In this document: positions 2,568 through 52,985 of the stretch, piece after piece
How the letters are laid out: the number at the start of each line of letters is the position of its first letter
Numbering within the stretch: position 1 is the first letter of the stretch
Source: Oopsacas minuta
Taxonomy: Eukaryota; Animalia; Porifera
Assembly: GCA_024704765.1 (NCBI GenBank)
Contig: JAKMXF010000055.1
Span: 194,353 to 258,352, forward strand
DNA length: 64,000 bases
Reading direction: 5' to 3'
Notes under the pieces: generated by a model
Databases searched by the model: none
What the model saw: the letters and a program-made list of their open reading frames with translations, nothing else
What the model was told of the DNA's origin: nothing
Program-made: the position numbers and the translations under genes

Positions 2568-3772
2568 CACTGGACAACATTTTACAACTTATTTTTTATT
2601 CCTTGCTCGTTTCAAGTTTACCTAGACTAATATGGCCATGCTGAATCCAAATCTGGCCTTAGATTTTTTCTAACACGTCACGTTTTTGAGATATGACATA
2701 TGCACACAACAACCCGTAATTGTCATTTTGGCTAATTTTGGCTGTGCAGAACAAAACATTACATGTAATAAACACAGTGATTGCTAGTGAAAATAACAGA
2801 ATTATCATTTTGCACAAGTTAACACAACCCAGGATGATTAAACCAGACAAAAATAACATTGTATCCTCTCAAAAGTGCTTTATACACTTGCTCTTTCGAG
2901 CATGTTTAGTGTCAGTTTCACGCTGGAGAAACCAGCAGTAGTCCTCCATCATGTTTGGGTTAAATCGACCTCTATACCGCGATTCCATCACGATATAGAG
3001 GTCAAAAATCCAGCAATATTTGTTGTGCAAAAATAACAATGCGACGTATGGTTTTTAGGTTCTCGCCAATCATAGGTACCGCAAATGGCATGGATTTCTT
3101 CTTTCCATTAAGCCATTGGATTAGACTGGCATAGCAGACGGTACAGCAGATGTGAGGTGCCAAGTTCTTGTCTTGGTCACCAACTTTGCAACCAAAGTAA
3201 TACTTGTAGCCAATCTTGACACGATTGGCAATATTTCTTCGCTGGGGCTTCGACGTAAATTTTCCACAAATATAACAGAAGTTATCTGGGTGGTTCGTGC
3301 ATTGTCTTCTGCTCGTATTCATCGTAAACAAAAAGCTTAAATACACAATCAGTTACAAACTAAAAATTCTGCAAAACAGTAATGTTGTTGGTTTATCGAT
3401 ACAGTCTACAATCCACCCGCAAGTAGGCTAAATAACCCCTCCTTATAGCCATGGCCAAGAACACTCAAGAATGCATTAATTGTCAAAAGATAAAACATTA
3501 CATTTACAAAATAATGTTAATATTAACCGTACATAATATGCATTGTTGACCAACAATTCGCTGGGAAAGAAAATTGTACAATAGGCCTAACTTGACTGTA
3601 TAGTACCTTATAATATAGTGCCAATCAATGCAAAATCCGAATTTCGTGAATTTTCATATCTTGAAATCCTGATGTGATAGACCAATTCTGATTTCAGATT
3701 TGGAATCAGCATCCCAAAGTTAGTCTAGGTAATATATTTTCATTTGAGGAATAAATTTGATGTTGCCCAGTG
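2568..3772 (-). mobile_element. Internally deleted Chapaev3-like (CMC) DNA transposon
   Basis: Imperfect TIRs CACTGGACAACAT...TACCTAGACTAA...ATGCTGAATCCAAATCTG (2568) and CACTGGGCAACAT...TACCTAGACTAA...ATGCTGATTCCAAATCTG (minus strand from 3772). ATA 3-bp duplication at 2565-2567 and 3773-3775. Family assignment from recalled motifs. Confidence 0.75.
2880..3346 (-). pseudogene. Chapaev3-like transposase remnant (N-terminal Cys-rich region joined to extreme C-terminus)
   Basis: ORF 3002-3346: CTNHPDNFCYICGKFT...GDQDKNLAPHICCTVC...WLNGKKKSMPFAVPM. Just downstream in another frame: SRYRGRFNPNMMEDYCWFLQRE. Catalytic core absent. Confidence 0.75.
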
Positions 3773-3775
3773 ATA

Positions 3776-4030
3776 TCTGCACAAATTTTGAGATTTTGCT
3801 AATTTGTTTACCTTATATTTATAAAAACAACAATAAATTTACATATGATTAATCCAAAAGTGTGAAAATCGGATTCAGCATGTTCGAAATATTTACTGAT
3901 GTTTTATTGAATTCTATTTACTTCCTTGATAAACACGATAAATACATTGTTAGGCTACAATTTCAAAATTGCATACCGTAAATCCTTTCCATGACAACGG
4001 ACAACCAAACAAACAACAATTGAGGTTTAC
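3776..4030 (+). repeat. Dispersed repeat family with (ACAA/ACAG)n tract; other copies at about 5520-5705 (-), 5895-5985 (+), 35120-35270 and 35770-35832 (+), 51745-51800 (+)
   Basis: Shared blocks GAAAATCGGATT(C)AGCAT(G/A)TTCG...TTGATAAACAC and ACCGTAAATCCTTTCC(A/T)TGACAACGGACA..CAAACAACAATTGAG recur. Class unresolved (Helitron/Helentron-like is a guess). Confidence 0.7.
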
Positions 4031-4285
4031 TTGCTGCTTGTTAGTCTGTTAGTCTGTTTGTTTGTAGAACTTTGTTATGAATTTCTATCCAATAAGTGTA
4101 GGTAAAATACAATAAATAATCACTTCTCGAATTGGTTTGTAATTTACAATAATTATACATTTAAAGAGTATTAATAGGCAATAGTTCTAGTTCATTAAAA
4201 TTAAATCAGAATAATCATGTGAAAAGTATTCTATTACAACATATCACTTATTAACATAACGTGTTAAGCATATTGAATCGATGTG

Positions 4286-4293
4286 TATAAATA
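4286..4293 (+). promoter_or_regulatory. Candidate TATA box (TATAAATA) of Maf-like gene; mirrored at 7701-7708
   Basis: Consensus TATAAATA ending 72 nt before the ATG. The AT-rich background makes chance occurrence plausible. Confidence 0.35.
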
Positions 4294-4364
4294 GAACATA
4301 AATCTTTTTAAATACAACAATATATCCAAATAATAAGAATTAACACAACATTTATTCAGGGAAA

Positions 4365-4697
4365 ATGACAAGCAATATAACGGAAGCAGAAATAGTAAGC
4401 CTAGACATAAAAGAACTAAATAAGAAATTGAAATACAAAAATGTCTCCAAACCTGAACAACAAGAGCTAAAAAAACTAAGGAGAAAAATAAAAATGAATA
4501 AATATCGCAGAGATAGCCGCATGCGAAAAACAACAGAACTAGAGACATTATTGGAGCTGCGGGCACTCCTACTAGATGAATTAATAGGTTTGGAGCAAGA
4601 AGTTGTCTACTTGCATAACAGCAAAGATCATCTCATCAAACACATCCACTCCAGCGATGAAGATGATGAATATGGAGAATTTGTCGTAGTGGACTAG
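4365..4697 (+). CDS. Small Maf-like bZIP protein (copy 1), 110 aa, divergent basic region
   Basis: ITEAEIVSLDIKELNKKLK resembles the Maf extended homology region (LTDEELVTMSVRELNQHLR). Basic region KKLRRKIKMNKYRRDSRMRK. Five-heptad leucine zipper TTELETL-LELRALL-LDELIGL-EQEVVYL-HNSKDHL. Acidic tail. Confidence 0.8.
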   Translation: MTSNITEAEIVSLDIKELNKKLKYKNVSKPEQQELKKLRRKIKMNKYRRDSRMRKTTELETLLELRALLLDELIGLEQEVVYLHNSKDHLIKHIHSSDEDDEYGEFVVVD

Positions 4698-7001
4698 TCA
4701 TATATGCGCACGCGGCTTCCCTGCGTTGACTTATATTTGTTTGTAATTTTATTATTTAATTGATTCAATTTTGTAATTATTTATAGTCTTATTAGTGGGT
4801 ATTCATTAACGAAACGCGGTTGAATCATTTTAATTAATAATGTGCCAGACTTGATTCGAAATTCCTTTTTCACTGGATAGTAATATTTCTATTACTAATA
4901 TTACTGCATGTTAGTAGACAATAACTAGAATTTAATTAGATATTACAATTGCAACACCTGATGTAGCATTAGGAATTTGGAGCGATAATATACTCAGACA
5001 GATATGTAGTTTTAAGTAGGTGGTGCGACAATTCCAGGCACAATGCTGTTGAGCAATAAAACATGTAAAATAATATTAAAAATACAAAAGTAAATTTATT
5101 ATTTCTCATTACCAATCTCATCTAATTTCTTTGCTGTATAGATAAATTTGCTATTTTTGTTAATGTTCTCATGCGTTACTTTACAGTTTGCTCCACGAGC
5201 CACCGCACTGGCTAGTAGCTACGTCCCTGGTATAGATTGAGTAGGTGCTGGTCTGATTAATATTATATATATAACACACTGTTTTAATAAGTAAATTTTC
5301 CTGACAAATTGAAGTCAGATAGTGTTGCTAATATATCACGTCAGCAATAAATTTCATGCACTGAATGAAGCTCTTTATTTATAACTGCGATTGAATAGAG
5401 ATTACTGGTTTTATACAATTAGAGCCACTCTTCTCCGCGTAAATATTGTCAATATATAGTAGTAACAACTTTGATTCTACATACTGCCGAAACCGGTATT
5501 TCCTAATAGATATTTGCAGGCAAATCTATATTATTAAATCTCAATTGTTGTTTGTTTGTCTGTCCGTTGTCAAGGAAAGGATTTACGGTTATACAATTTT
5601 GAAATTGTCGCATAAGTATGTATTTATCGTGTTTATCAAGGAAATAAATAGAATTTAATAAAACTTGACTAAATATATCGAATATGCTGAATCCTATTTT
5701 CATACTTTAGAATAATCATATGTATACATATTTCTTTGTTGTTTTTATGAATATAAAGTAAGTATACATATTATTTCCGTTGCCTAAATTAGCCCAATCT
5801 CAAAATATCGTAAGAGACTTACTCTATAAGTAGCAAGCGAAGGGCACCAATATGAATAAAAACTGCATTAAATTTTGCTTTGTTACTGTTGTTTATTTAG
5901 TGTGAAAATCGGGTTAGCATGTTCGATGTATTTTGTTAAGTTTTATTGGATTCTATTTACTTTCTTGATAAAAATGAAGAAGGATTTTTGTCCAGACATG
6001 TAGACACGTATGTATTTGACATAGAGGTCTAGTTCTTCTTTAGAATAGTTGATAAATTCTAAATATTAGTAGGTTTAAAATTGTTAGAACACAACGAAAA
6101 TTACATTTGTAGATTGTTCTTATGTTGATTTCCTTATATTAGTCTTAATTTGTGTGGAGTGTGAAGAAACTAGTCTAAAGTCAAACATTCAAGTATTCTA
6201 CAACTAATAATTAATTACATTTTATCACTATTTTTTAGATCTATTACATCATAATAGAGATGGATCATCGTTTCATAAATTAGATTAAATAATATCCAAT
6301 AAGTCTCCTCTGGTGTAACTAACGTAAAGCATGATATTGATAGTGTGCTATCTCCATTAATATATATTAATATATGTATTGATTAAACCAGATCAGGGGT
6401 TCCTAACCCCCGACATTACATTGCCCATCGAAAATCCTAATAATACCCCACTTATGGTAATTACCCCGGTGCTTCGTTAGAATTTAGATCAGAATTTATT
6501 GTGATCAGTTCCACACTAATTTTGAACAGTTGTTATCATTTTGACCGATAGATTCTAATCTGCTTCAAACAGTGAATTTTCTCCAATATTTATGGCATAG
6601 GTACAACTAGGACTATTTTGGTGCCCACCGAAATGTTCCTAGTTGCGGCTATACCAACGAATATCCCCAGCTCCTGCTATCAAATATTCTACCAAATGAA
6701 AGTTAAGCAAATATTAAGTTTGTGAGTGGATAGTGCCTAACTTGGAATTCGAGTGCCCACCTAGATTTGGCTCCACTATAATAGAAAATGTATGAGGCGG
6801 GTGAGAATGAGAGCCACGACGCCATCTTTTCCGCCCTGACTCATGATCCTATTGCGCCAATGTTCAATGGTGATAGTAAATATATCATGAATTACTGAAT
6901 CAATTATAACACTCCTGAATTTCTTAGCAACTGCGGAAAGTATTATTAAATCCCAATTGCATATCCGTCTGATATTAAATGTTATACTTCGTATGTATAA
7001 T

Positions 7002-7928
7002 TATATTATCGCTCCAAATTCCTAATGCTACATCAGGTGTTGCAATCGTAATATCTAATTAAATTCTAGTTATTGTCTACTAACATGCAGTAATATTAGT
7101 AATAGAAATATTACTATCCAATGAAAAAGGAATTTCGAATCAAGTCTGGCACATTATTAATTAAAATGATTCAACCGCGTTTCGTTAATGAATACCCACT
7201 AATAAGACTATAAATAATTACAAAATTGAATCAATTAAATAATAAAATTACAAACAAATATAAGTCAACGCAGGGAAGCCGCGTGCGCATATATGACTAG
7301 TCCACTACGACAAATTCTCCATATTCATCATCTTCATCGCTGGAGTGGATGTGTTTGATGAGATGATCTTTGCTGTTATGCAAGTAGACAACTTCTTGCT
7401 CCAAACCTATTAATTCATCTAGTAGGAGTGCCCGCAGCTCCAATAATGTCTCTAGTTCTGTTGTTTTTCGCATGCGGCTATCTCTGCGATATTTATTCAT
7501 TTTTATTTTTCTCCTTAGTTTTTTTAGCTCTTGTTGTTCAGGTTTGGAGACATTTTTGTATTTCAATTTCTTATTTAGTTCTTTTATGTCTAGGCTTACT
7601 ATTTCTGCTTCCGTTATATTGCTTGTCATTTTCCCTGAATAAATGTTGTGTTAATTCTTATTATTTGGATATATTGTTGTATTTAAAAAGATTTATGTTC
7701 TATTTATACACATCGATTCAATATGCTTAACACGTTATGTTAATAAGTGATATGTTGTAATAGAATACTTTTCACATGATTATTCTGATTTAATTTTAAT
7801 GAACTAGAACTATTGCCTATTAATACTCTTTAAATGTATAATTATTGTAAATTACAAACCAATTCGAGAAGTGATTATTTATTGTATTTTACCTACACTT
7901 ATTGGATAGAAATGCATAACAAAGTTCT
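7002..7928 (-). repeat. Right arm of 927-bp inverted repeat
   Basis: Reverse complement of 4066-4992. Arms are separated by a 2009-bp non-palindromic spacer (4993-7001). Confidence 0.97.
7297..7629 (-). CDS. Small Maf-like bZIP protein (copy 2), identical to 4365-4697
   Basis: Identical 110-aa translation in the ORF track; convergent with copy 1. Confidence 0.8.
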   Translation of the reverse strand: MTSNITEAEIVSLDIKELNKKLKYKNVSKPEQQELKKLRRKIKMNKYRRDSRMRKTTELETLLELRALLLDELIGLEQEVVYLHNSKDHLIKHIHSSDEDDEYGEFVVVD

Positions 7929-8980
7929 TGTAAATTCGAGAACTTTCATTTGTAATTTATTTCTTCTTATGAGAATTCTTAAATAAATAATTCTGGTACT
8001 ATTAATTAACAGATTATGAATATGCGAATTATGACCTAAATTTTAGGAAAAGGTGATGGATTGCGTTCCCTTTTAACAATTAGAATGACCATATGGCAAT
8101 CATAGACCCTCTCCCTTCTATCCTGTGTAGTATATGGTGTTTTAAAATCAGAGCAGAGTATTTCCTGAATAATGAAGGTTATTGCCTTTATTTGCTAATA
8201 TTCAGTTGAAATATTGTTTGCCAACAGAAGTTCAGGTTCCGTTCACTCTCCGTACAAGTAATAGGATAATTCCATTTATCAATTCAATATTCTTTAAAAC
8301 TAAACCAGTTTGTGATATCATTGTGATCTGTGTAAATAGGCCGAAGTTTCTGTATCATCTACCATACAGGACTAATATCGAAATAAACTATAAGACAATC
8401 AACACTATTATACTACTTCTCATCGAATCGCCTAGAACCCTCTAAACCAGTGATCCGCGGATCCTTTAAATTGAACATAAGGGGTCCGCTACCCTAAACT
8501 ATACTTCTATAGTTCCGTCTTGCTATATTCTTCATTCATTTTGTATGGCTCTGGTTTACAAGTATGTAGCAGCATGAAATTTACTTACAGCGCTACATTA
8601 CTTTTATTATTGCCTTTATCGCATCAATTATAACGCAATTCAGCTGAACATCCTAAAATAATAAATAGAGTTACGTAATCATTTGTTTAATTTATAAAAA
8701 ATGCGCTATACATATTGACTCAAATATCTCTCGTTCAAGGACATTTGCATTTGAAAATATAAATGTGGAATGGGGGTTATTAGGAGATTCACCGGCCTGA
8801 CCTCCCCACTTATAAAGGTTCTACTGTACTCTATATTTTATATATCTTTGAATTCCTTTACAAGCTGAAATGAAAGTTTTTGCAGTTGACTTTTGGAAAG
8901 ATTGTATTTTCATAGCATTAGTTAATTTATATTAATAATTTCTTATTGAACAGTATGTTTGAATATTTAGACATTTCCGT

Positions 8981-10039
8981 TGTTGTAGTGCCATCTGTTC
9001 CTCCTAATTTAGTCCCCCGGACTTCTGGCACTAAGGCAAGATGTCCCTGTACCAGTTAGATTTGCCCAAAATAACCTGGATATTATGTTATATTCTAATG
9101 ATAAATAATTAATCATAATTCATAACAAACTAATAACAATAAATAATCGTACTACTTCTGAAATTCCTTTCTATACTCTATAGTACGAGTAAAACCTATT
9201 CCAAATTCAGGTATTTCTAATCAGTTTGGTACTACGACCTTTCTCTGCCATCTCTTCGTGCACTCTCGACGTGGCTTTTTTGATGGCGGGAACAGAGTCA
9301 TGTTCAATTGTTCTAGACAGCTGCGTAGAAATGTTCGTAACTTTTTCGACGAATAACTCGGCGTTCGTTTTTGGAAGATTTTAAAGGATAGCGTTTAAAA
9401 GCTGCATGTTCGTATATCTGATCATACAATATATCCAACATTATTGTAGAGAAATGAATACAAGAAATTTAGTGACTACAACTCATATTCATTGAACACT
9501 AGTATATACTACAACCGGTGAGTGTTGAATGTTATCGCAAGTTTCAACATAGATTTATCAAGTAAATATCTCTGTGGCATTTATAATATCAACCACAACA
9601 AGTATTACAGTGGCGTTTCTAGGCTTTTGATTAGGAGTGTGCTAATTTATATGAGTTGACATTGAAATTAAAAAGATTTCGTCAGACTATATTCACTATA
9701 ATAGTACTTCTCTATCAATGAAGGGCAGGGAAGCACTCGATTTGATTGTAGGAACCACAGAATACTTGATTTTTAGACAACAATCTCTGTCTAAATCTTT
9801 ATCAACTACTATCATTGTTGTTCAAGGGTTGTGCTCGAGCACCCATTGCGCGCTCCTGGATAGTGAATACGCCACTAAGTATGTACAGTTGAAACCGGTG
9901 TCATAGTGCCACAAGTCCGGGGGGACATCTGACCCTAGAGCCAGAAGTCCGGGGGAGACAGCTGACTCTAGTGCCATTAGTCCGGGGGAACTCCTTTCCC
10001 TAGTGTCAGAAGTCAGGGGGGACAGCTGACCCTCTCACA
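8981..10039 (-). mobile_element. Degenerate Ginger-like non-autonomous element with subterminal 32-bp repeats
   Basis: TGT...ACA ends with 16/24 terminal identity. Flanks CCGT/CAGT. Inverted copy of the repeat unit at about 9010-9033. Minus-strand fragment at about 9210-9420 (IYEHAAFKRYPLKSSKNERRVIRRK) resembles the YP...RRK N-terminus of the neighbouring Ginger1 transposase. Confidence 0.45.
9904..10032 (+). repeat. Four tandem 32-33 bp units (TAGTGCCAGAAGTCCGGGGG...ACAGCTGACCC)
   Basis: Units start at 9904, 9936, 9969 and 10001, with no unique spacers. Confidence 0.9.
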
Positions 10040-10800
10040 CAGTATCAAGCTATTATTGAATAATAATTTTAAACCTGTATTTCTGAGTTCTGCCTTAGTA
10101 ATCATCAGATCGGTATCAAGCTCATAATTTTATCACTATTTACTACTGCCTTATTCAGTGATGAGACTTCAATTAACATGGTTTCCGCTCGTATTGATAG
10201 CCAGTTTAAGAAGTTATGTAAAATTTTCGGAAAGGTGAAAGGCATAGCTATGTAAAAGCAAGATTAAATTTAGCTGCATACCATGCAGGTCCTTAAAGAC
10301 CTATGATGTGTAGCAATCGTACTTTGGGTAAATTTTTACGCAAATACCCAATTCATGGACAGATAGAAAGCCTGGATAAAGACTGGACATCTTAATAAAA
10401 TTTTCAGAACCTATACTGTCCAGGATAGACAATTGCAACCCTAATTCACACCTGTGTAAACGGTTTGGGGGATTCTCGCCCCTAAATCGCTAGCGTTTTG
10501 TGGACCCCTGGATCCCTAAAACGGTAGCGAAATAGAGATTAATAAAGGGATACTGGGCCGTTGCATAGATTAGTGAGGCACGTAGAATATTGAGGCACTG
10601 TCTACATAGACCATGGATGAATATCTACTGTAGAATATTGAGGCACGGTAACAGAAGGAGAAACTATATACATAATATGTAGTTATCATTATGCGGTTTA
10701 TTTGTAGTATTGACGTAATAATGACTTGACACATTTGTGACCAAGATAGCTTTCTCGAATTCGCATATAAATTGTAAATTATTTTCAAGTAACAATAAAG

Positions 10801-12750
10801 ATGGAAGTATTTTATGAAAAAATTGTAAAGTTATAAAAGATGGAACATATCCTGAACCTGACGGAGTTTCCTCTGCAAAAAAAAGATGGAATTTTAGAAG
10901 AAAAGTTTCACGATATTTCTCGGTAAAGATAACAAACTTTACAAGATAAAACCTCAATATTATTTATAATCTACAGTTGTGTTCGCCAAATGGCAAGTGG
11001 TACCTTGCTGAAAATTTGCTGACAAATAGGCGATCACTACTGTATATAAATATTTAAGTTATTGATGCAATATCATATGAACAATTATTTAGAAAGTGGA
11101 CATCAATGGTTCAACAGTTGATTTGGAAGTCCCGTTAGAAACGGAAAATGATCATATAATCAAAAAACATCATGATCAAGTTGGTCACCCTGGAATCAAT
11201 GCCACTGTTGATTCCATACATCAACAATATACATAGAAAGGCTTATATACACATATCATTGATTATGTAAGTACGTAACTTACTTGAGTACAGTTCATTC
11301 TCAATATTTCCGAAATTGAAGGAATAGTATTATTATTACTATGAATATTTTGTTATTATTGAGAGTTGAGAAACTTGTATGCTTCCCTAAAATCCTTTTT
11401 CTTAAATTCAGAGTACATAATTTGATATTCATTGAATATTTAATATACTAGGTGGCTTCCTGTAAGATATGCCAAATGACAGCAACAATTCCAAAATCAA
11501 CCAAGAAACTTCAACCCATTCAACCTCCTTCTAGAACATGGAAACACTTAGGCATGGACTTGATTTGTGACCTCCCTGTGAGTTCCGAAGGATTTAAGCA
11601 TGTTCTTATCAAAGTTTGCTACTTAAGCATGTTCGTAGTTGTAAGACCCCTTAAGAGGAAAACTTCTGAAGAAGTTATTCAAAATCTTCAAGATATCTAT
11701 GCTACAATGGGATTACCGGATATTATTCAACATGACAAAGGCTCGGAGTTTACAATCAGTTTAAGTGATATTAGAACTTAATATATCTGAAATTGCTTAA
11801 TTAATTAATATATTTTCTTTAGATGTTTCAGGAATTCCATTGCAAACTACACATTGACAACCGTAGTACTAGAGCTTATCATCCTATGGCTAACGGTTTG
11901 GTAGAGGCACACAATAAAATCTTGAAAACGTAAGTTATAATTCCGAAGATTAGATCGGCAAGTTACTCAGTGTAATAAAGATATTGAATAACTATTACTT
12001 ATTGATCTTAGGAAGTTAACAAAGATGGAAGTCCAGACAGGCAATCACTGGTCCCAATTACTCAAGCTCGCATGTCTCACTATGAATTCTACAAAGAAGA
12101 AGTCACATGGACAAACTCCTTTTAATGTAAAGTGGGGACGGGAGTGAAAACATGTGGATCTGTTGTCTACATATCCAAACCTGGCTATTGATCCTATAGA
12201 AGACTTTGAACATGAAGACGCTATATTTAGAGAAATTCTATCGCAGCAATCAGAAAATGACTATATAGACGATCAAGATGAATTTTCCCCGCCATGTTCT
12301 GAGCCAGGAGAAGAATTAAGCTGTATCTATGAGACTCGAGACACGCGATTCAAATCAGCTGCAGAGGATATCCATTCTGAACAACTCAGACAAAAACTGC
12401 AATATGATAAAAAAGTCAATACCAAGGGGTGAGCTTTCCTACAATTTCTTGATATTAGTGTTATATCTAACCCATTAAATTTAGGTCTTCAATAAAGATA
12501 GGTGATAGGGTCATTTACACAAACATGAACAAATTTAAACGGTTGCCAAACACGAAAAATAAACCAAAATTTTTGGACCTCAAACAGTCTGTAAAGTCAC
12601 TGAGAATCACATTACTATTTGTGAAAATATCTCAGGAGCTAAGAAAAACAAAAACATACCAATTGACCTCGTTCGTTTGTATGCAGAACGAAAACCAAAA
12701 TCCCTCAGACAAGCTAACCCAATGGGAATTAATCACATTTCTTCCAAGGT
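10801..12750 (+). pseudogene. Intron-containing Ginger1 integrase/transposase pseudogene
   Basis: N-terminal GTYP...FRRK motif. H2C2 finger HHDQVGHPG...DY|VASCKICQ split by intron 11267-11451. DDE core GMDL / QHDKGSEFT / YHPMANGLVEAHN. Intron 11930-12011. TPF..WGRE and a GPY/F-like region. Contains stops and frameshifts. Confidence 0.85.
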
Positions 12751-14346: not shown

Positions 14347-15855
14347 TTGAGAGTTCCACACCTACTTATGGCGAAACTTCAGAAGAATCAACAAATATAC
14401 AAGAATGAAGAAAATACAATTAGTCATTATTTTGTGCTAGTATCAAGTTTTTATGTGTTAGTAGAGTAATATCATAAATTGCAAGATTATATTCTAACCA
14501 TGTAATAACAAGTTAAATTTTGTTCATTACAGTATAACTTTCACTAATGTGAACGTCAGAAACCATCAAAATTCGTTTATCTTATCCAAAGTTTGTATTA
14601 ACCATAGTGAAATCAGTTGGAAAGTATTGAAAGACCAAATTTTGGAAAATTACTTGCTTGCTTAGCCAGGAGATTCGTATTGACTGCGTTTGTAATAATA
14701 ATTAATGAGGTTTCGCTGTACACGTATCTGTTGTCAAAAACAGGTATATTTTCAAGTCATGATTGAAATACGTAATTACCATTAATGAAAGAAAACCGCA
14801 TGATGACAACTACATATTCTGTATATAGTTTCTCCCTCTGTTACCGTGCCTCAATATTCGACAGTAGATATTCATCCATGGTCTATGTATACAGTGCCTC
14901 AATATTCTACGTGCCTCACTAATCTATGCAACAGGGCTCCAATCTGAAGGCAAGCCTCACTACCTCCCAGATTTTGGGTTGTGTCTTTGGAAGCGATATC
15001 TAATTGTTATTTGGTGAGAAGGATTTTGATCGAATTAGCTAATGGTAGCTCATTAAATTTGAGTATTGGTGGATTATATTCACTATTCTTTCCGTTGTTC
15101 AGGATTTTTTCCTTGGATTCACGTCAATATAAGTATATATAACTTCAAAACACACAGACAAACATCTAAGAGGTAGTGAGATATTCCAGCAACATCCAAG
15201 AGCATAATTAACACCAAAAATCCAAGGTCAATTTCTTAGCATAGAACCGAGGATCCCCATAACACTAGCGTTTTGGGGATGGGGATCCCTAAAACGCTAG
15301 CGATTTAGAGACGAGGATCTCCAAATCGCGCTTACACATGTATAAGCGCATTTTAAGGACCCTTGGGCACCAAAATACTAGCGATGTAGGGACGGGAATT
15401 CCTAAATCGCTAGCGTTTTATGTGTGGTGGCCTTAGCTTAAATCGCCAGTTTTGGTGACTCTAGTGATTTGGGGTTCCAGTTTTATACATTTCACAAAAA
15501 TAAAAATAATCCCTTTCAAAGAAAATATGCCAACCAGTCTGAAAATGATCTATCATATTCTATTATGTGTAATCCACCTAATGAGAATTGATTGAAACTT
15601 CTCAAACAAAGATATTTAATTGAGGGTCCAATTTCAAAAATGTCGCCCAAATTTTTGACAGATTTTTCAAATTTTATTTTCTTGAAACTATCATGTGGAA
15701 TGCGTTGTAACTTTTAGGTTGCAGTGTGCAAAGTTTCAAACAAATCGAAGATGGTTAGTAAAATTCATCCATTGTCACTACAACACAGTTGGCAAATACA
15801 GGCAGTTTGGGGAATTAGGCATGTAGGTAGCACCATTTGTTTGAAATCATGTATA

Positions 15856-17118
15856 CAGGGTGACAATTAACTTCTGATACACGGATATACCCTGGTTTTT
15901 CCTAAACTAGTTATTCTTTCAATCTTAAAGCATATTATAATAAATCTTCCTATCCAAATCTATTCGATATAACCGCCTTTTGCCTTTACTACAGCTTTAA
16001 GTCGTCCTTGAAACCGTTGGACAGATTTACGGAGTTCTTGCGGAATTATCTCTCATTCGGTAATCAAAGCCTTCCGCAGAGATTCCAAATTTCTATGTGG
16101 AGTAGCGCAGGCTCTGTTCTGTAAAGTCCCCAGACGGGATAGTCAAGTCGATTCAAATCCGGACTTGAAGGAGGCCATTCTTCCTTGGACAAAAAGTCAA
16201 TATTTTCCCCTTTTTAAAATCTAGGATTGAGTTGCTTTCGAGGCATCCGCTGGCGCAGAGTCCTGATGGAATATCCAGGGTGTGTTTTTGAACAAGGATG
16301 AACCAGCAGATTTGATTATATGCTTAAGAGTCAACTCTCTATATGTTTGCAAGTTAATTATGTCCGAGAATCTGCGGACACTCCAGCCCAGACCATCACA
16401 GAAAGCGGTTTTTGCAAACGATCGATGAATTTAATTCTCTCAGGGATGTCTTTGCATGACGACACAATAATTCTATCATTTTGACGGTTAGTTGCTTCTT
16501 CTACCGTGAAAATCCTTTCGTCCGAAAGCAATATCTCTTCATAATCTTCATTTACGAGGTGCCGCAGAAGCCTTTTGCACCTTTCAACTCTTTTTACCCG
16601 AAGAGTGGGAGTGAGATGATGAACTGTTTGCTGTTTGAGTGATTTAAGTCCCAGGTCCTCATGTATCACCTTTCGCAATGTTTCGCGATTACAGAGTACT
16701 CCTTTGCCATCTTCCGGATTGACCGCCTGGGATTTCGGCGGATTTTACTGCGGAGTTTTTCCCTTAGTGCTCTCGTACGAACTGTAGTCGCTCGGCCTGA
16801 ACGAGGCTTGTCCTTCACACTTTTGGTACCGTTATATCGTTTAATAGTACGATAACTGGATAATCTGTTGATCTTTCCACTTTTTCAAAATCTCGCTCTG
16901 TGAGCTCCCGGTCATAAATAATGAGATAATTTTTGACCTCTTCACTTCCATGTTGAAATTTCTGATTTTATACGTATTTAGATTTAGATTTAGATTACTG
17001 TTTGAGCATAACAGGAAGACATATATGTTAGAATATAAATGATAGAAATGGTAATATAATAAATTTGGAACGTATCAGAACTATTGGAACTATGTATCAG
17101 AACTTAATTGTCACCCTG
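15856..17118 (-). mobile_element. Tc1/mariner-superfamily element, maT (DD37D)-like, inactive
   Basis: TIRs CAGGGTGACAATTAA(C/G)TTCTGATAC with TA flanks. Disrupted transposase 15960-16951: RSGR HTH linker, LSDERIFTVE, NRQNDRI, VMVWAGV, FHQDSAP, WPPSSPDLNRLDY. A frameshift prevents an exact D-D count. Confidence 0.88.
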
Positions 17119-18733
17119 TATATATAGTAAATGGATGCAAAGATATCGATTGGAAAAGCCAAAATTTATGCAAGATTATACCTTCATACAGTTTAGCGCG
17201 ATTTCATAAAAATGTACAACATTTGACGTTTATAGTTCGATAAATATCTGAATTTTGTAAACTCATGTTATAAAAATGAATTAATAATGTGTGAAATTCA
17301 GATAAATCTGAGTTTCCACTGATATATCTTCACGCCATTGTATTATGAGAACATCATAACGATGTTAGATTAGAATATGTAATGGTAAGGTAAATTAGCT
17401 GTTAGAAAATCAGAAGAATAGTTCAATGGAATGCGGATACAATTCTTTTTCTTAATTTGTAAACATACTCATATACTTTCCAGGTTAATCACACGGACAC
17501 TATGTTGAATTGCCAGCTTGGTAAAAATTTGTAAATGAATAGAACAATTCTATACTTATTCTAACACAATTGGCTCCAAAATTATACTAATTTGACCAAT
17601 AAATAACAATCTATATCCAATTTTATCCTATAGTATAAAATGTAAGGCACACTAAGGTGAAAATATCGTAGTTTCTCGATATAATTACGTATATATGAAA
17701 TGAACTTAATTTCCAGGAAAGTTGTCTAAATCTGATAAGGTTACTAATGTTTGATAGGAGACAATTTCTAATGTTTCAGGAATACGACCATCCCGAAATT
17801 ACGACTATATTCTTTGGTCCCATGGGTGGTCGTAATACTGACAAGGGGGGAACGTGTTAAGTGGTGGTCAGGCCATTGGCTTGATCTATTGTAAAGTGGT
17901 CAGGCCCGGACCAACAATTAAATAGGCCAATTCCAAAAGTAGTCAGTCCATGGCCTGACTGGCCTAACCGTTTGCGCCGCCCCTTTAAGAAGTTCCACTG
18001 TATTAAATTCGAGTGCAGTATATGTATACCCGCTTGCGGAATGTGTAAATCCGCATGCGGGATAAGAACTAACTTTGGGAGAGGATCAAATTCGAATTTT
18101 TGATGTTGTGGAATGAATATTTGCACTAGTTACAACACATTTCAATTGGGAGGGAAACGGTGTCTTTATTTACCAATTTTTTGATGTTTGAATAGGTTAC
18201 ATTTGCACAAGTTCCTCTTGCGGAATTAGATATTTATTCTGCCCATAACTCTGTGGAGGGTAAAAGCTCAACTCGCGTAAATCCCCCACATAAGATCCCA
18301 GATTATGGACGTCGCCAGGGGGGGGTCATAGGGGCAATGCTCCCCCCAGATAAACTATACACCAGACACCTTGGCCTAATTTCATGAAGCTACATTGAAT
18401 TGTTACCTGCTCCATAATAAATTATATACACACTAAGATGCGTAATTAGGAAAGAGTGACTTATTTGTGTTTCTTTGACGTAATCAAATATTCATTTATT
18501 GATTATAGTATTCGTACTTGCTAACACTCTCAGGAAATCCCCGGGATTTGGCAAATTAAATTACTAAATATATTATGAGGGTTTGTTAAGAATGAGTATT
18601 CCACATGTTTACTACAATTAGGTTTTGAGCAAAGGTGATTACTGGTCTGGTTTAATTAAAACATTTTTGATTTCATAATCCAATTTCTCTGAACATTTCA
18701 AAATATTATCTTCAATTCAACTTTACTTTTTAG

Positions 18734-34679: not shown

Positions 34680-35832
34680 CTATATATACCCTTCGTCCCT
34701 TCGCAACGCGATAAACTCGGCAATTTCCGCCACGAGGTAGAGTATATTAGTTACTGATGATTTTTTCTAATCTATTTTGTTAGGACGAGCACGCTTCGTA
34801 TGCTCCAGTTGTTGGCTTACAAACACTTCGTGTTTGTGTGTGTTTTGTGTGGAGCTCGGAACTTCATGACGCACAAATATTATTTTTTAATAAAAACAAA
34901 AAATTACATATAAGAAACTTGAAAGTCTGAAATTCGGTCTCTGCGTACTTTGTTTCCCAGTTTGGTCGTTGAGAGCTAGTCTCTACGTTGATCTTTCAGA
35001 TTTCAATTGTTTGTTTACTTTATCCTCTTGAATCAATAATAAATTTACATATGAGAAACTTTAAAATGCGAATTTCGGATTTCGAATTCTTTGTTACCCC
35101 ATTGTATAGTTGAGAGTAAGTCTCTACTATATTTTGAGATTTCAATTTGTATATTCATAAAAACAACATTTATTTACGAATGATTAATTAAAAAGTGGGA
35201 AATCGGATTAGCATATTCGCAATAGTAAGTTTATTGAATACGATTACTTGCTTAATAAACAGGATAAAATACTTGTCAACCATCTAGGGATTTGACGTAT
35301 GATCGAGGGGGGGATTACTAAATCTAAGGAAATATCGAATATTTATAGCTCCTTGTATCATAAAAGAGGGAAAATTTCATATTACAGTATACCCCGCTAA
35401 TCCGAACACCACTGTTCCGATTGCAAAATTGTTCAATTAGTGAAATGCATTGAAACAATACTATAGAATCTGGGAGGACATTTTCGAAAGTTGTACAAAC
35501 GATGGAATGGGGGCCAACATGCGTAATATAGTATTAGATATTGATCTGTAGTAGAATTGGATATAAATCGGCTATGTTTTACGTTTGAAACAATTTCCCA
35601 AAGATTGTATAAGCTCTAGGCCCTGTTCAGATCAGCGAGGGTCTACTGTATTTGCATACAAATTGAAATCCAGAGATTTGGAGAAAATTATCCAGGGAAA
35701 CCGTTACAAGAGGTTGGCTTATATGATACTACATCGTTTCTCTATATCTCGGAATTGAGAAATTAGAAATCAAAATAGCATACCATAAATCCTTTCCTTG
35801 ACAACCTACAAACAGACAAACAACAATCGAGA
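34680..35832 (+). repeat. Longer copy of the (ACAA)n-tract repeat family, interrupted by a pogo-like MITE
   Basis: Shares blocks with 3776-4030 in the same order. 34790-34900 also matches 48440-48530 in reverse. Confidence 0.55.
35385..35648. mobile_element. pogo-like MITE
   Basis: TA|CAGTATACCCCGCTAATCCGAAC...GTTCAGATCAGCGAGGGTCTACTG|TA. Confidence 0.7.
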
Positions 35833-50545: not shown

Positions 50546-52985
50546 ACTTGACGCCGCTTCCTCCTCAAACACAAACTGTACATTTATTTTGAACAAATTG
50601 TATTGAAATTTTGTATAAATGGAATTTTTTTAAATTATTACTAAAAAACCAAATTAAACAACAAAAAATTAATAATTTACCAAATAATGAATCAATAACA
50701 AAGTCGCTAATAATTCGTGAATAGAATTAAATAACTTTGAAAATTGTTGCTTGCCTGTATGCATATAATGGAAATCCGATAGTAGATATGTAATAGGAGG
50801 TATAAATTGTGAAGCCATAGTGGATAGAAATAATAGATGGCGGTAAGTGAACCGGGGAGCATGCATTTGTCCAAATTCGTATAATGAATTAGTCCAAATA
50901 TCAAAATGGGCATCATTCCAAAATTATGGCGATGTTTGCGTTAGTCCAAATTGTTGGTGATCGAATGCATGGATTCATGAGGAAATTTGGTCGCAAAAAC
51001 ATAGTCATTTACTTTTGTTGTTTTGAATCTAAATACTCTCAGCAACTCACAGCCTGCTCGAGATCCAACAATAATCCAATCAAAACACCACACTAGTTAT
51101 TCAACTAGTCTACTGAAATGCTCATCTCCTCAGCTCAAGCCAATCTAGCTAGATAATAAATGAAAATGCCAATTCTAGCACCTTCCAACGTGAGTCCAAT
51201 GCATAAATGAATCAGTATACGCATTGTTTTTCAAGTTTATCAATAAATAGGGCTGGCTGGCATAAAACACTTACAAATTTAGAACTCATTTATTCTCGAA
51301 CCATAATTATTAATTATATCAAAATACCACAAATACGTCATAGTCCCATTTCCAGAAGTGCGACTAAAAATCTGGTGCTATGTTTGAAATCTACAGTGTC
51401 GATTTAGATTTACTATATATGACAATAATTTAACAAATATCTTCAGTGTAAGTATCTATTACCCCATAATCACCATTTTGCCCCACGGTGTATATTATTG
51501 ATAGATAGTTCAACTTCTTAAGCTCGAATTGCAAATATACTTCTAATTTAGAAATTTTACTCTCTAAGAACGACCATTTTTGTAAGTGGCCCGAAGGCTA
51601 TAGCCTACTTAGCCTAATGGTAAATCCGGCACTGCGTGCGACCGTGAGACTCAAATTAGTACAGGATCAATTAATCGTCGATAAAGTACCATCCTAGGAG
51701 AGTCCCTGCAAGAAAAAGTGCCTGCCCAGAATTCCTGGATAAACTCCTGTATACCGTATATCCTTTCCTTGACGACGGACAAACAGATATACATCAATTC
51801 AGATTAAAGAATATTGATTAATCAATTAATTATATCAAACTCACTTTGTCCATGCACAAGATGGTGAGGGGAAAAAAGCTGTAGAATTATATACGATATT
51901 AGTATACTGAATTCGAATTTCATTGCGAAAAACAAAATACAATAACACGTCTAAAATTTCAAGTAATAATCATACAATTGCACTGTAATATGTCCACGTT
52001 TTTATATGAATATATATAAACGTTACTAGTAAGATAATATTCAATAATGTAATGCATATGAATACCAAATTTAATGCAATCGATACTAAGTCAATATTTA
52101 TAAGTTCAGTAACTTGATAGTTTTTATCTAGTTAAATGTAAACGCAGTTTTACGAATAGTAGGGAGAACATTTGGTAGTAATGTTATGGTCAGGCCCGCG
52201 CCAGGAGCTTCGACAAATGAACGATCGAGCCATTGAAATTTGTAAATGTTCAAGAGGTTATATATATGTCTGGACTGCATTTTGGCTTGCCTTTGCCTAG
52301 GGGCTAACTCGAAAACGAAATTATCTACACATATAGTATGTTATGTCGATTTGCAAAATCAGCCTCGATTGTTCTCTTAGTGTAGGACCTTATAGTTAGG
52401 TCGAGTAGGTGTCTTTGTAATTTGTAGCTGAAGTTGGCTAGTGCATTTTAAAGGCACATTGATGTATGGGGATCTGTTGTTGGCTGATTAATTACGCACA
52501 GGACCCATGTAAAAGGGTTTTGAGTTTACACTATTTTACAATTCAACAACTAAAATATGATCGTTCTGTAAATTCACAATACAGTGCAAGTTCTATAAGT
52601 GGGGTCTCTATAAAAGGGGAACCTATTTAAGCGGGACCTTTTTTGTCGACCTTCATTCATTTCCATAGAAAAGAAGTTCTACATGGTTTCAAAGATGGAG
52701 TAGTTTTTAACATATATTTGCAAATTAAGCTAAGAAATGACGTCATTTCGATCTGAGTTTTGCCAATTCGTACATATCAATAATACATTTATTCGGGTGA
52801 AAATGTACCAGTTTCTTATTATCGGTGATTATAGATTTTTCCCATCCATTATATCCATTTCCTCTTATCCATGGTCCAGTGAAATTTGACATGATCAGGT
52901 CTATCTATAGTAGGCTATGACATAGTATACCTTAGTGAATACCAACTTCGTTTTGCTGTCTAATAGAGAAAAACTTAGTCAAAAC

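Follow-up and report, generated by a model that had tools for sequence, protein, structure and literature searches.

We describe here a gene-bearing palindrome in the genome of the glass sponge Oopsacas minuta, found in a 64,000-nucleotide stretch (hereafter the window) of contig JAKMXF010000055.1 (assembly GCA_024704765.1), with the first base of the window at about position 194,353 of the record. Both inverted arms carry a complete gene for a 110-amino-acid (aa), small-Maf-like bZIP protein, which we refer to as the mini-Maf gene, and the two arms are nearly identical. We found a diverged and partly deleted version of the same palindrome at a second locus, L002, on contig JAKMXF010000353.1. 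From the comparison of the two loci, the palindrome is very probably an old inverted duplication of a ~0.94-kb intronless mini-Maf unit, whose arms would have been homogenised by recurrent intrachromosomal gene conversion while the spacer between them evolved freely.

A repeat search identified one dominant inverted pair in the window (4066-5000 and 6994-7928, 935 nt, 99%), and direct alignment narrows this to a clean 927-bp stretch of homology (4066-4992 aligned with 7002-7928) at 99.7% identity, which is far beyond chance for an inverted repeat of this length. The three mismatches (4080 A/7914 C, 4873 C/7121 T and 4947 A/7047 G, with the right-arm bases quoted as reverse complement) are all located outside the open reading frames (ORFs). 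Each arm comprises 299 bp 5′ of the ATG, the ORF and 295 bp 3′ of the stop codon. The alignment confirms the geometry proposed in an initial annotation made from the sequence alone, namely convergent 927-bp arms with three non-coding differences around a 2009-bp spacer, and likewise bears out its description of a whole gene unit per arm, with a TATA-like box, a 333-bp ORF, about 300 bp of 5′ sequence and 295 bp of 3′ sequence. The palindrome lies in repeat-rich DNA between a Peptidase_C12 gene and a gene for a 241-aa protein, and no further copy of the arm was found within the window.

Two coding sequences for exactly this 110-aa protein lie on the contig, and its closest relatives are O. minuta proteins, the closest paralogue being P0002 at L002 with 88% aa identity. 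BLAST of window positions 3000-9000 revealed that the similarity between the two loci extends beyond the gene alone: L002 is collinear with window 3785-7813 at ~88% identity (Table 1). Left flank, left arm and spacer are present in both the window locus (W) and L002 (also denoted P), as are the two inner arm/spacer junctions, which match base for base. The right arm of L002 is without the segment that matches window 7129-7627, which includes the ORF, and without its outer ~105 bp, while the spacer of L002 holds an additional 3.3 kb. Outside the duplicated block the flanks of the two loci are unrelated; W and L002 are therefore paralogous loci and not alleles. Furthermore, homology with both right arms goes on for another 11 bases in the left arm of L002, so that the ancestral arms were at least 938 bp long; the arm limit at 4992 in the window is due to a 14-bp deletion in the window left arm.

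We then asked how the four arms relate to each other. In an alignment of W-left, W-right, P-left and P-right (191 + 127 columns), the arms group by locus at 39 variable sites and by side at none. Between W and L002, the 5′ non-coding part of the arm is 87.8% identical, the 3′ non-coding part 86.4% and the ORF 92.8%, whereas within L002 the arms are 99.5% identical over the 194-bp promoter part and 93.7% identical over a short inner remnant. As judged from the common layout, this comparison shows that the palindrome predates the ~12-14% non-coding divergence between W and L002. Without homogenisation the divergence between the two W arms would be expected to equal or exceed that between the loci, which amounts to roughly 110 differences; only 3 are seen. 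A palindrome older than the split of the loci, W arms differing by 0.3% and the 39:0 site pattern together argue for arm-to-arm gene conversion, which appears to have been active in both loci after their separation. Gene conversion keeping the arms identical had been one of the options raised in the initial annotation, and it is the option that the junctions common to L002 and the site pattern support, as does the comparison of arm-to-arm with inter-locus divergence, made here against the paralogous L002 (0.3% versus ~12-14% in non-coding sequence).

At 4873 and 4947 the right W arm has the same base as both arms of L002, which makes the left-arm bases derived; they represent new mutations that have been neither erased nor spread yet; at 4080 (A/C) L002 has a T. 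In L002, the inner remnant that was cut off by the deletion appears to have begun to drift.

The initial annotation had also raised a recent, one-off inverted duplication, in which youth alone explains the near-identity of the arms and no gene conversion is needed. Only 3 differences in 927 bp and a single palindromic pair in the window are what such an event would leave. L002 nevertheless repeats the arm-spacer-arm arrangement, its inner junctions falling at identical bases, and yet shows 12-14% non-coding divergence, so that the palindrome predates that divergence; two independent inverted duplications with identical junctions are not credible. Neither are the right-arm remnants of L002 an assembly error or a later copy from W, given that they are 99.5% identical to the left arm of L002 itself and 85% identical to the W arms. 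With the 39 sites that group by locus also contradicting it, we regard a recent duplication as extremely unlikely.

Table 1. Features of the palindrome in the window and the segments of L002 that match it.
Feature	Window position	Strand	L002 position	Identity	Remarks
Left arm	4066-4992	+	9705-10645	86-93%	complete mini-Maf gene unit; collinear with L002
Right arm	7002-7928	-			reverse complement of left arm, 3 mismatches in 927 bp
Spacer	4993-7001				2009 bp, non-coding; holds a dispersed-repeat insertion
Left ORF	4365-4697	+			110-aa small-Maf-like bZIP, 333 bp
Right ORF	7297-7629	-			nucleotide-identical to left ORF and convergent with it
TATAAA box	4286-4291	+			79 bp 5′ of left ATG; motif kept in both L002 arms
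TATAAA box, right arm	7703-7708	-			mirror of 4286-4291
Dispersed repeat	3785-4029	+			~245 bp, high-copy; ends 36 bp before left arm
Dispersed repeat, inverted copy in spacer	5523-5806	-		86%	identity is to the copy at 3808-4029
L002 match 1	3785-5528		9434-11184	87.7%	repeat, 36-bp flank, left arm, start of spacer
L002 match 2	5594-6409		14550-15369	89.1%	spacer
L002 match 3	6468-6931		15865-16338	82.2%	spacer
L002 match 4	6924-7128		16810-17014	89.8%	spacer into right arm, crosses the inner-right junction
L002 match 5	7628-7813		17014-17199	87.2%	promoter region of right arm

Next we examined whether the palindrome could be a mobile element. The initial annotation had suggested a foldback-type element with a captured bZIP gene inside its terminal inverted repeats (TIRs) and a TGT trinucleotide outside both arms (4063-4065 and 7929-7931) as a possible 3-bp target site duplication (TSD). 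Such an element would here be non-autonomous, with a Maf gene captured by each long TIR. The long TIRs, the TGT on both outer sides, the second copy on another contig and a neighbourhood rich in transposable elements all go in the direction of this explanation. It fails at the arm ends. The homology between W and L002 continues 280 bp to the left past the arm end, through the 36-bp flank and the dispersed repeat, and where the window has TGT, L002 reads TGA. Furthermore, the right W arm and the left arm of L002 have one extra A outside the proposed end, which turns the flanking triplets into TTG and GTA, and the arm probably begins one base earlier than proposed. The matching TGT pair therefore comes down to the chance substitution of a single base, and the duplicated unit does not end at the arm tips.

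The content of the palindrome does not resemble such an element either. Among the ORFs of at least 60 aa in 4066-7928 we found only the Maf ORFs and their antisense ORFs, in agreement with the absence of a transposase already stated in the initial annotation, and in the additional 3.3 kb of L002 no ORF of at least 80 aa looks transposase-like by eye, with no profile-library run on those ORFs. The TIRs of foldback/Galileo elements are internally repetitive (PMC3573991), whereas Tandem Repeats Finder detects in the arms only 19-20 bp arrays of ~2 copies and no tandem subrepeats that would build a TIR. Foldback/Galileo elements are similar to the palindrome in having long TIRs around a middle segment and no transposase in their non-autonomous copies, but they are multi-copy with fixed-length TSDs, while the arms in the window are unique gene sequence, the TSD fails in L002 and the flanks are common to both loci. 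We found only two loci with the 110-aa protein or a close relative, by protein look-up and not by a genome-wide DNA search. Within the same limit, no copy was met that ends at the TIR tips with differing flanks, as the sole other copy found has the 280 bp of left flank in common. The distant paralogues and orthologues (L003, L008-L010) are single genes with similarity at the ORF level only (68-74% at the nucleotide level) and no palindromes. A mobile palindrome is accordingly not supported, no new kind of mobile element is revealed, and we consider a foldback origin very unlikely.

Two of these distant loci, L008 and L009 (ENA ERZ25072740), are long contigs from one sample that agree in gene order, with near-identical sequence, around a Maf paralogue of 120 aa; both are likely haplotigs belonging to the assembly of another hexactinellid.

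The preferred explanation of an old, homogenised palindrome requires that the palindrome is physically real. According to its publication (PMC10280926), the O. minuta assembly combines self-corrected PacBio with Illumina reads in a SPAdes hybrid and was then scaffolded, polished with Pilon and gap-filled. A hybrid assembler could in principle have joined the two sides of the high-copy spacer repeat wrongly, from either two arm copies or a single one. For this, we used the four sequencing runs that hold the region. Logan contigs built from these short reads bridge three of the four junctions, namely outer-left (3987-4438), inner-left (4874-5141 and 4963-5482) and inner-right (5732-7031). Contig ends fall at the 4873 difference (break 4872/4874) and, inside the arms, at a depth of exactly k-1 bases. 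A break at an arm difference indicates two distinct arm copies in the reads, as expected for a two-allele bubble; the arms are also not 100% identical. Moreover, the same architecture was assembled independently on the L002 contig, which repeats the order of left arm, left half of the spacer, repeat, right half of the spacer and right arm at 88% identity, something that a chimeric join would not do. That such artefacts do occur is illustrated by L004 1-11034 (ENA ERZ26869290, ctg355906), a metagenome contig of another glass sponge in which a related Maf gene (5320-5667) sits at the centre of a 100% palindrome with arms of ~5 kb. The sibling contigs L003 and L005 are without this palindrome, which is therefore probably an assembly artefact of the long-read foldback type, and being artefact-like it was set aside and not used as a comparison case. 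Taking both sides into account, an assembly artefact is a highly improbable explanation of the window palindrome.

Nevertheless, a number of points weigh against our reading of an old palindrome with converting arms. No long read or single contig spans arm, spacer and arm, and none crosses the high-copy repeat at 5483-5731, across which the linkage rests on the published hybrid PacBio/Illumina assembly. A contig over the outer-right junction is absent among the pieces listed, and the four runs derive from a single sample and study, probably being the data that went into the assembly, and are thus not independent of it. The gene conversion is deduced from the pattern of differences rather than directly observed. 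Judged by base composition only, as no outgroup for non-coding DNA exists to polarise changes, we saw no sign of GC-biased conversion: the non-coding GC content of the arms (0.23-0.29) is not raised above that of the spacer (0.32).

A secondary caveat is that read-derived contigs of two runs (X2 and X3) carry, in the ORF at 4374-4408 and its mirror, 4374T together with 4401T and 4408C. The first of these bases matches L002 and the other two match neither locus, leaving room for further, unassembled copies; this variant may represent either a divergent allele or a third copy, missing from the assembly.

Next, we examined how the block came to be present at two sites. The dispersed repeat at 3785-4029 occupies the same place left of the arm in L002 and is therefore part of the duplicated block. 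This led us to consider repeat-associated transduction, in which a ~4.1-kb block of repeat and palindrome would have moved as a unit by way of the repeat at its left edge. Such an origin concerns the spread of the block and is compatible with the gene-conversion explanation of the arms. Homology between W and P begins on the left (3785) exactly where the dispersed repeat starts, and both loci are in repeat-rich DNA, as transduction would predict; the block ends nevertheless show no poly(A), TSD or terminal repeats, and there are only two copies. In addition, the right end in L002 is truncated and unreadable, and several partial repeat copies upstream in L002 blur the boundary. We therefore hold transduction to be unlikely; the simplest account of the spread is that the block was copied by an ordinary segmental duplication within repeat-rich DNA. 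It is likewise doubtful that repeat-assisted copying of the ~4.1-kb block between chromosomal sites was one route of the mini-Maf/CNC bZIP expansion in glass sponges. We also considered recombination between the inverted repeat copies (3785-4029 and 5523-5806) that would have flipped a former tandem pair; both loci, however, have the present orientation.

The dispersed repeat itself ends in ...CAATTGAGATTTA and could not be classified: it has no TIRs and no tRNA-like part, and a search for a tRNA or Rfam origin gave no hit. More copies are present at 35131-35831 (a ~700-bp version) and 51748-51819 of the window and at 9090-9680, 14492-14734 and 18092-18284 of L002. In the read-derived contigs its word depth is 10^4-10^5, compared to 16-100 in bins of unique spacer and right flank, values that are per contig and repeat-contaminated and hence unusable as copy number.

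The spacer, at 82-89% identity to the spacer of L002, is not homogenised. In both loci it contains a hairpin-forming inverted repeat of 70-130 bp (window 6586-6688, L002 15982-16111), which lies away from the centre of the palindrome, has a DNA fold of -15.5 kcal/mol (z -3.8) and may be a small miniature inverted-repeat transposable element. A 10-bp hairpin at the outer-right arm end (7921-7946) was evaluated as a mechanistic scar and rejected, because with a z of -2.2 and 8 of 200 shuffles folding equally well it is not significant.

Two observations concern the surroundings of the loci. Just upstream of the L002 palindrome (L002 8017-8349), an ORF fragment resembles, as read by eye from the translation, the C-terminal part of a Tc1/mariner-type transposase, which suggests a setting rich in transposable elements. 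Left of the window palindrome, at 3002-3346 on the minus strand, a 114-aa Cys-rich ORF (CxxC ... CxxC) with no Pfam hit, in DNA that is moderately to highly repeated (word depth 10^2-10^4), is probably part of a transposable element.

We next turned to the protein encoded in the arms. The ORF matches the Pfam family bZIP_Maf (PF03131) over residues 6-92 with an E value of 1.1e-13 (51.9 bits, cut-off 22), and MafG is its closest solved relative (E 1.7e-5). The protein is laid out as a Maf extended homology region, a basic region, a zipper and an acidic tail. Between the W ORF and the ORF of P0002, synonymous divergence (dS) is 0.19 and nonsynonymous divergence (dN) is 0.05; the resulting dN/dS of 0.26 points to constraint on the coding sequence and is consistent with a functional coding sequence. 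In size and plan the protein is similar to the small Mafs (MafG, MafK and MafF), which have ~110-160 aa, an extended homology region with basic region and zipper, and no activation domain. Unlike in these, the DNA-contact motif of its basic region departs from the canonical Maf residues (N-x2-YA-x2-CR), which were not found in the alignment to MafG. KNRGYAASCR of MafG aligns with KMNKYRRDSR of the window protein, so that Asn is replaced by Met (with an Asn one residue later), Ala-Ala by Arg-Arg and Cys by Ser, while Arg is retained. In the paralogue P0002 (ORF at L002 10001-10333), the displaced Asn is further changed to Lys (KMKKYRKDSR).

We propose the following mechanism for the evolution of the two loci. 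As the comparison of W with L002 shows, the palindrome existed, complete with its left flank and the two inner junctions, before the ~4.1-kb block was duplicated to the second locus, and each locus has homogenised its own arms since that duplication. Homology-directed repair or synthesis-dependent strand annealing, with the other arm as the template, would account for the transfer of sequence. Non-crossover events would copy sequence from arm to arm and crossovers would merely flip the spacer, which would make the inverted orientation stable against deletion. The outcome would be two identical, independently promoted and convergent gene copies under purifying selection, with doubled dosage and mutual proofreading. 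L002 illustrates the alternative fate, in which a deletion of ~500 bp removed the ORF of one arm and the short inner remnant subsequently diverged.

Previous studies of mammalian sex-chromosome palindromes have described more than 99% arm identity maintained by arm-to-arm conversion in structures that are far older (PMC3723533, PMC8600007, PMC8327919, bioRxiv 10.1101/800185). Like P1-P8 of the human Y and the palindromes of the primate and mouse X, the O. minuta palindrome is a gene-bearing inverted repeat whose spacer is not homogenised and whose arms are sometimes lost by deletion. The mammalian arms, however, range from more than 8-10 kb up to megabases, while here they are 0.93 kb with one gene per arm, in a sponge with no known sex chromosome and with no sign of GC-biased conversion. 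Furthermore, the age of the structure is derived here from a paralogous locus in the same genome and not from orthologues in other species.

At a more similar scale, the Drosophila Hsp70 inverted pairs are an example of inverted gene pairs that evolve in concert. These are also kilobase-scale intronless units in inverted orientation that are homogenised, promoters included, by ectopic gene conversion. The Hsp70 pairs are divergent and heat-shock regulated, whereas the pair described here is convergent and encodes a transcription-factor-like protein, and a decayed second copy of the palindrome allows its conversion to be dated. For invertebrates, the concerted evolution of small inverted duplicate gene pairs has been reviewed (PMC3924832).

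Taken together, the palindrome provides a compact and datable example of concerted evolution in an early-branching animal, with 99.7% identity between its arms set against the 12-14% non-coding drift of its sister copy. It would place arm-to-arm conversion at the kilobase scale in a glass sponge, outside mammalian sex chromosomes, and the sister copy at L002 shows the consequence of one broken arm. For the expanded mini-Maf family, this calls for caution in dating young duplicates by sequence identity alone.

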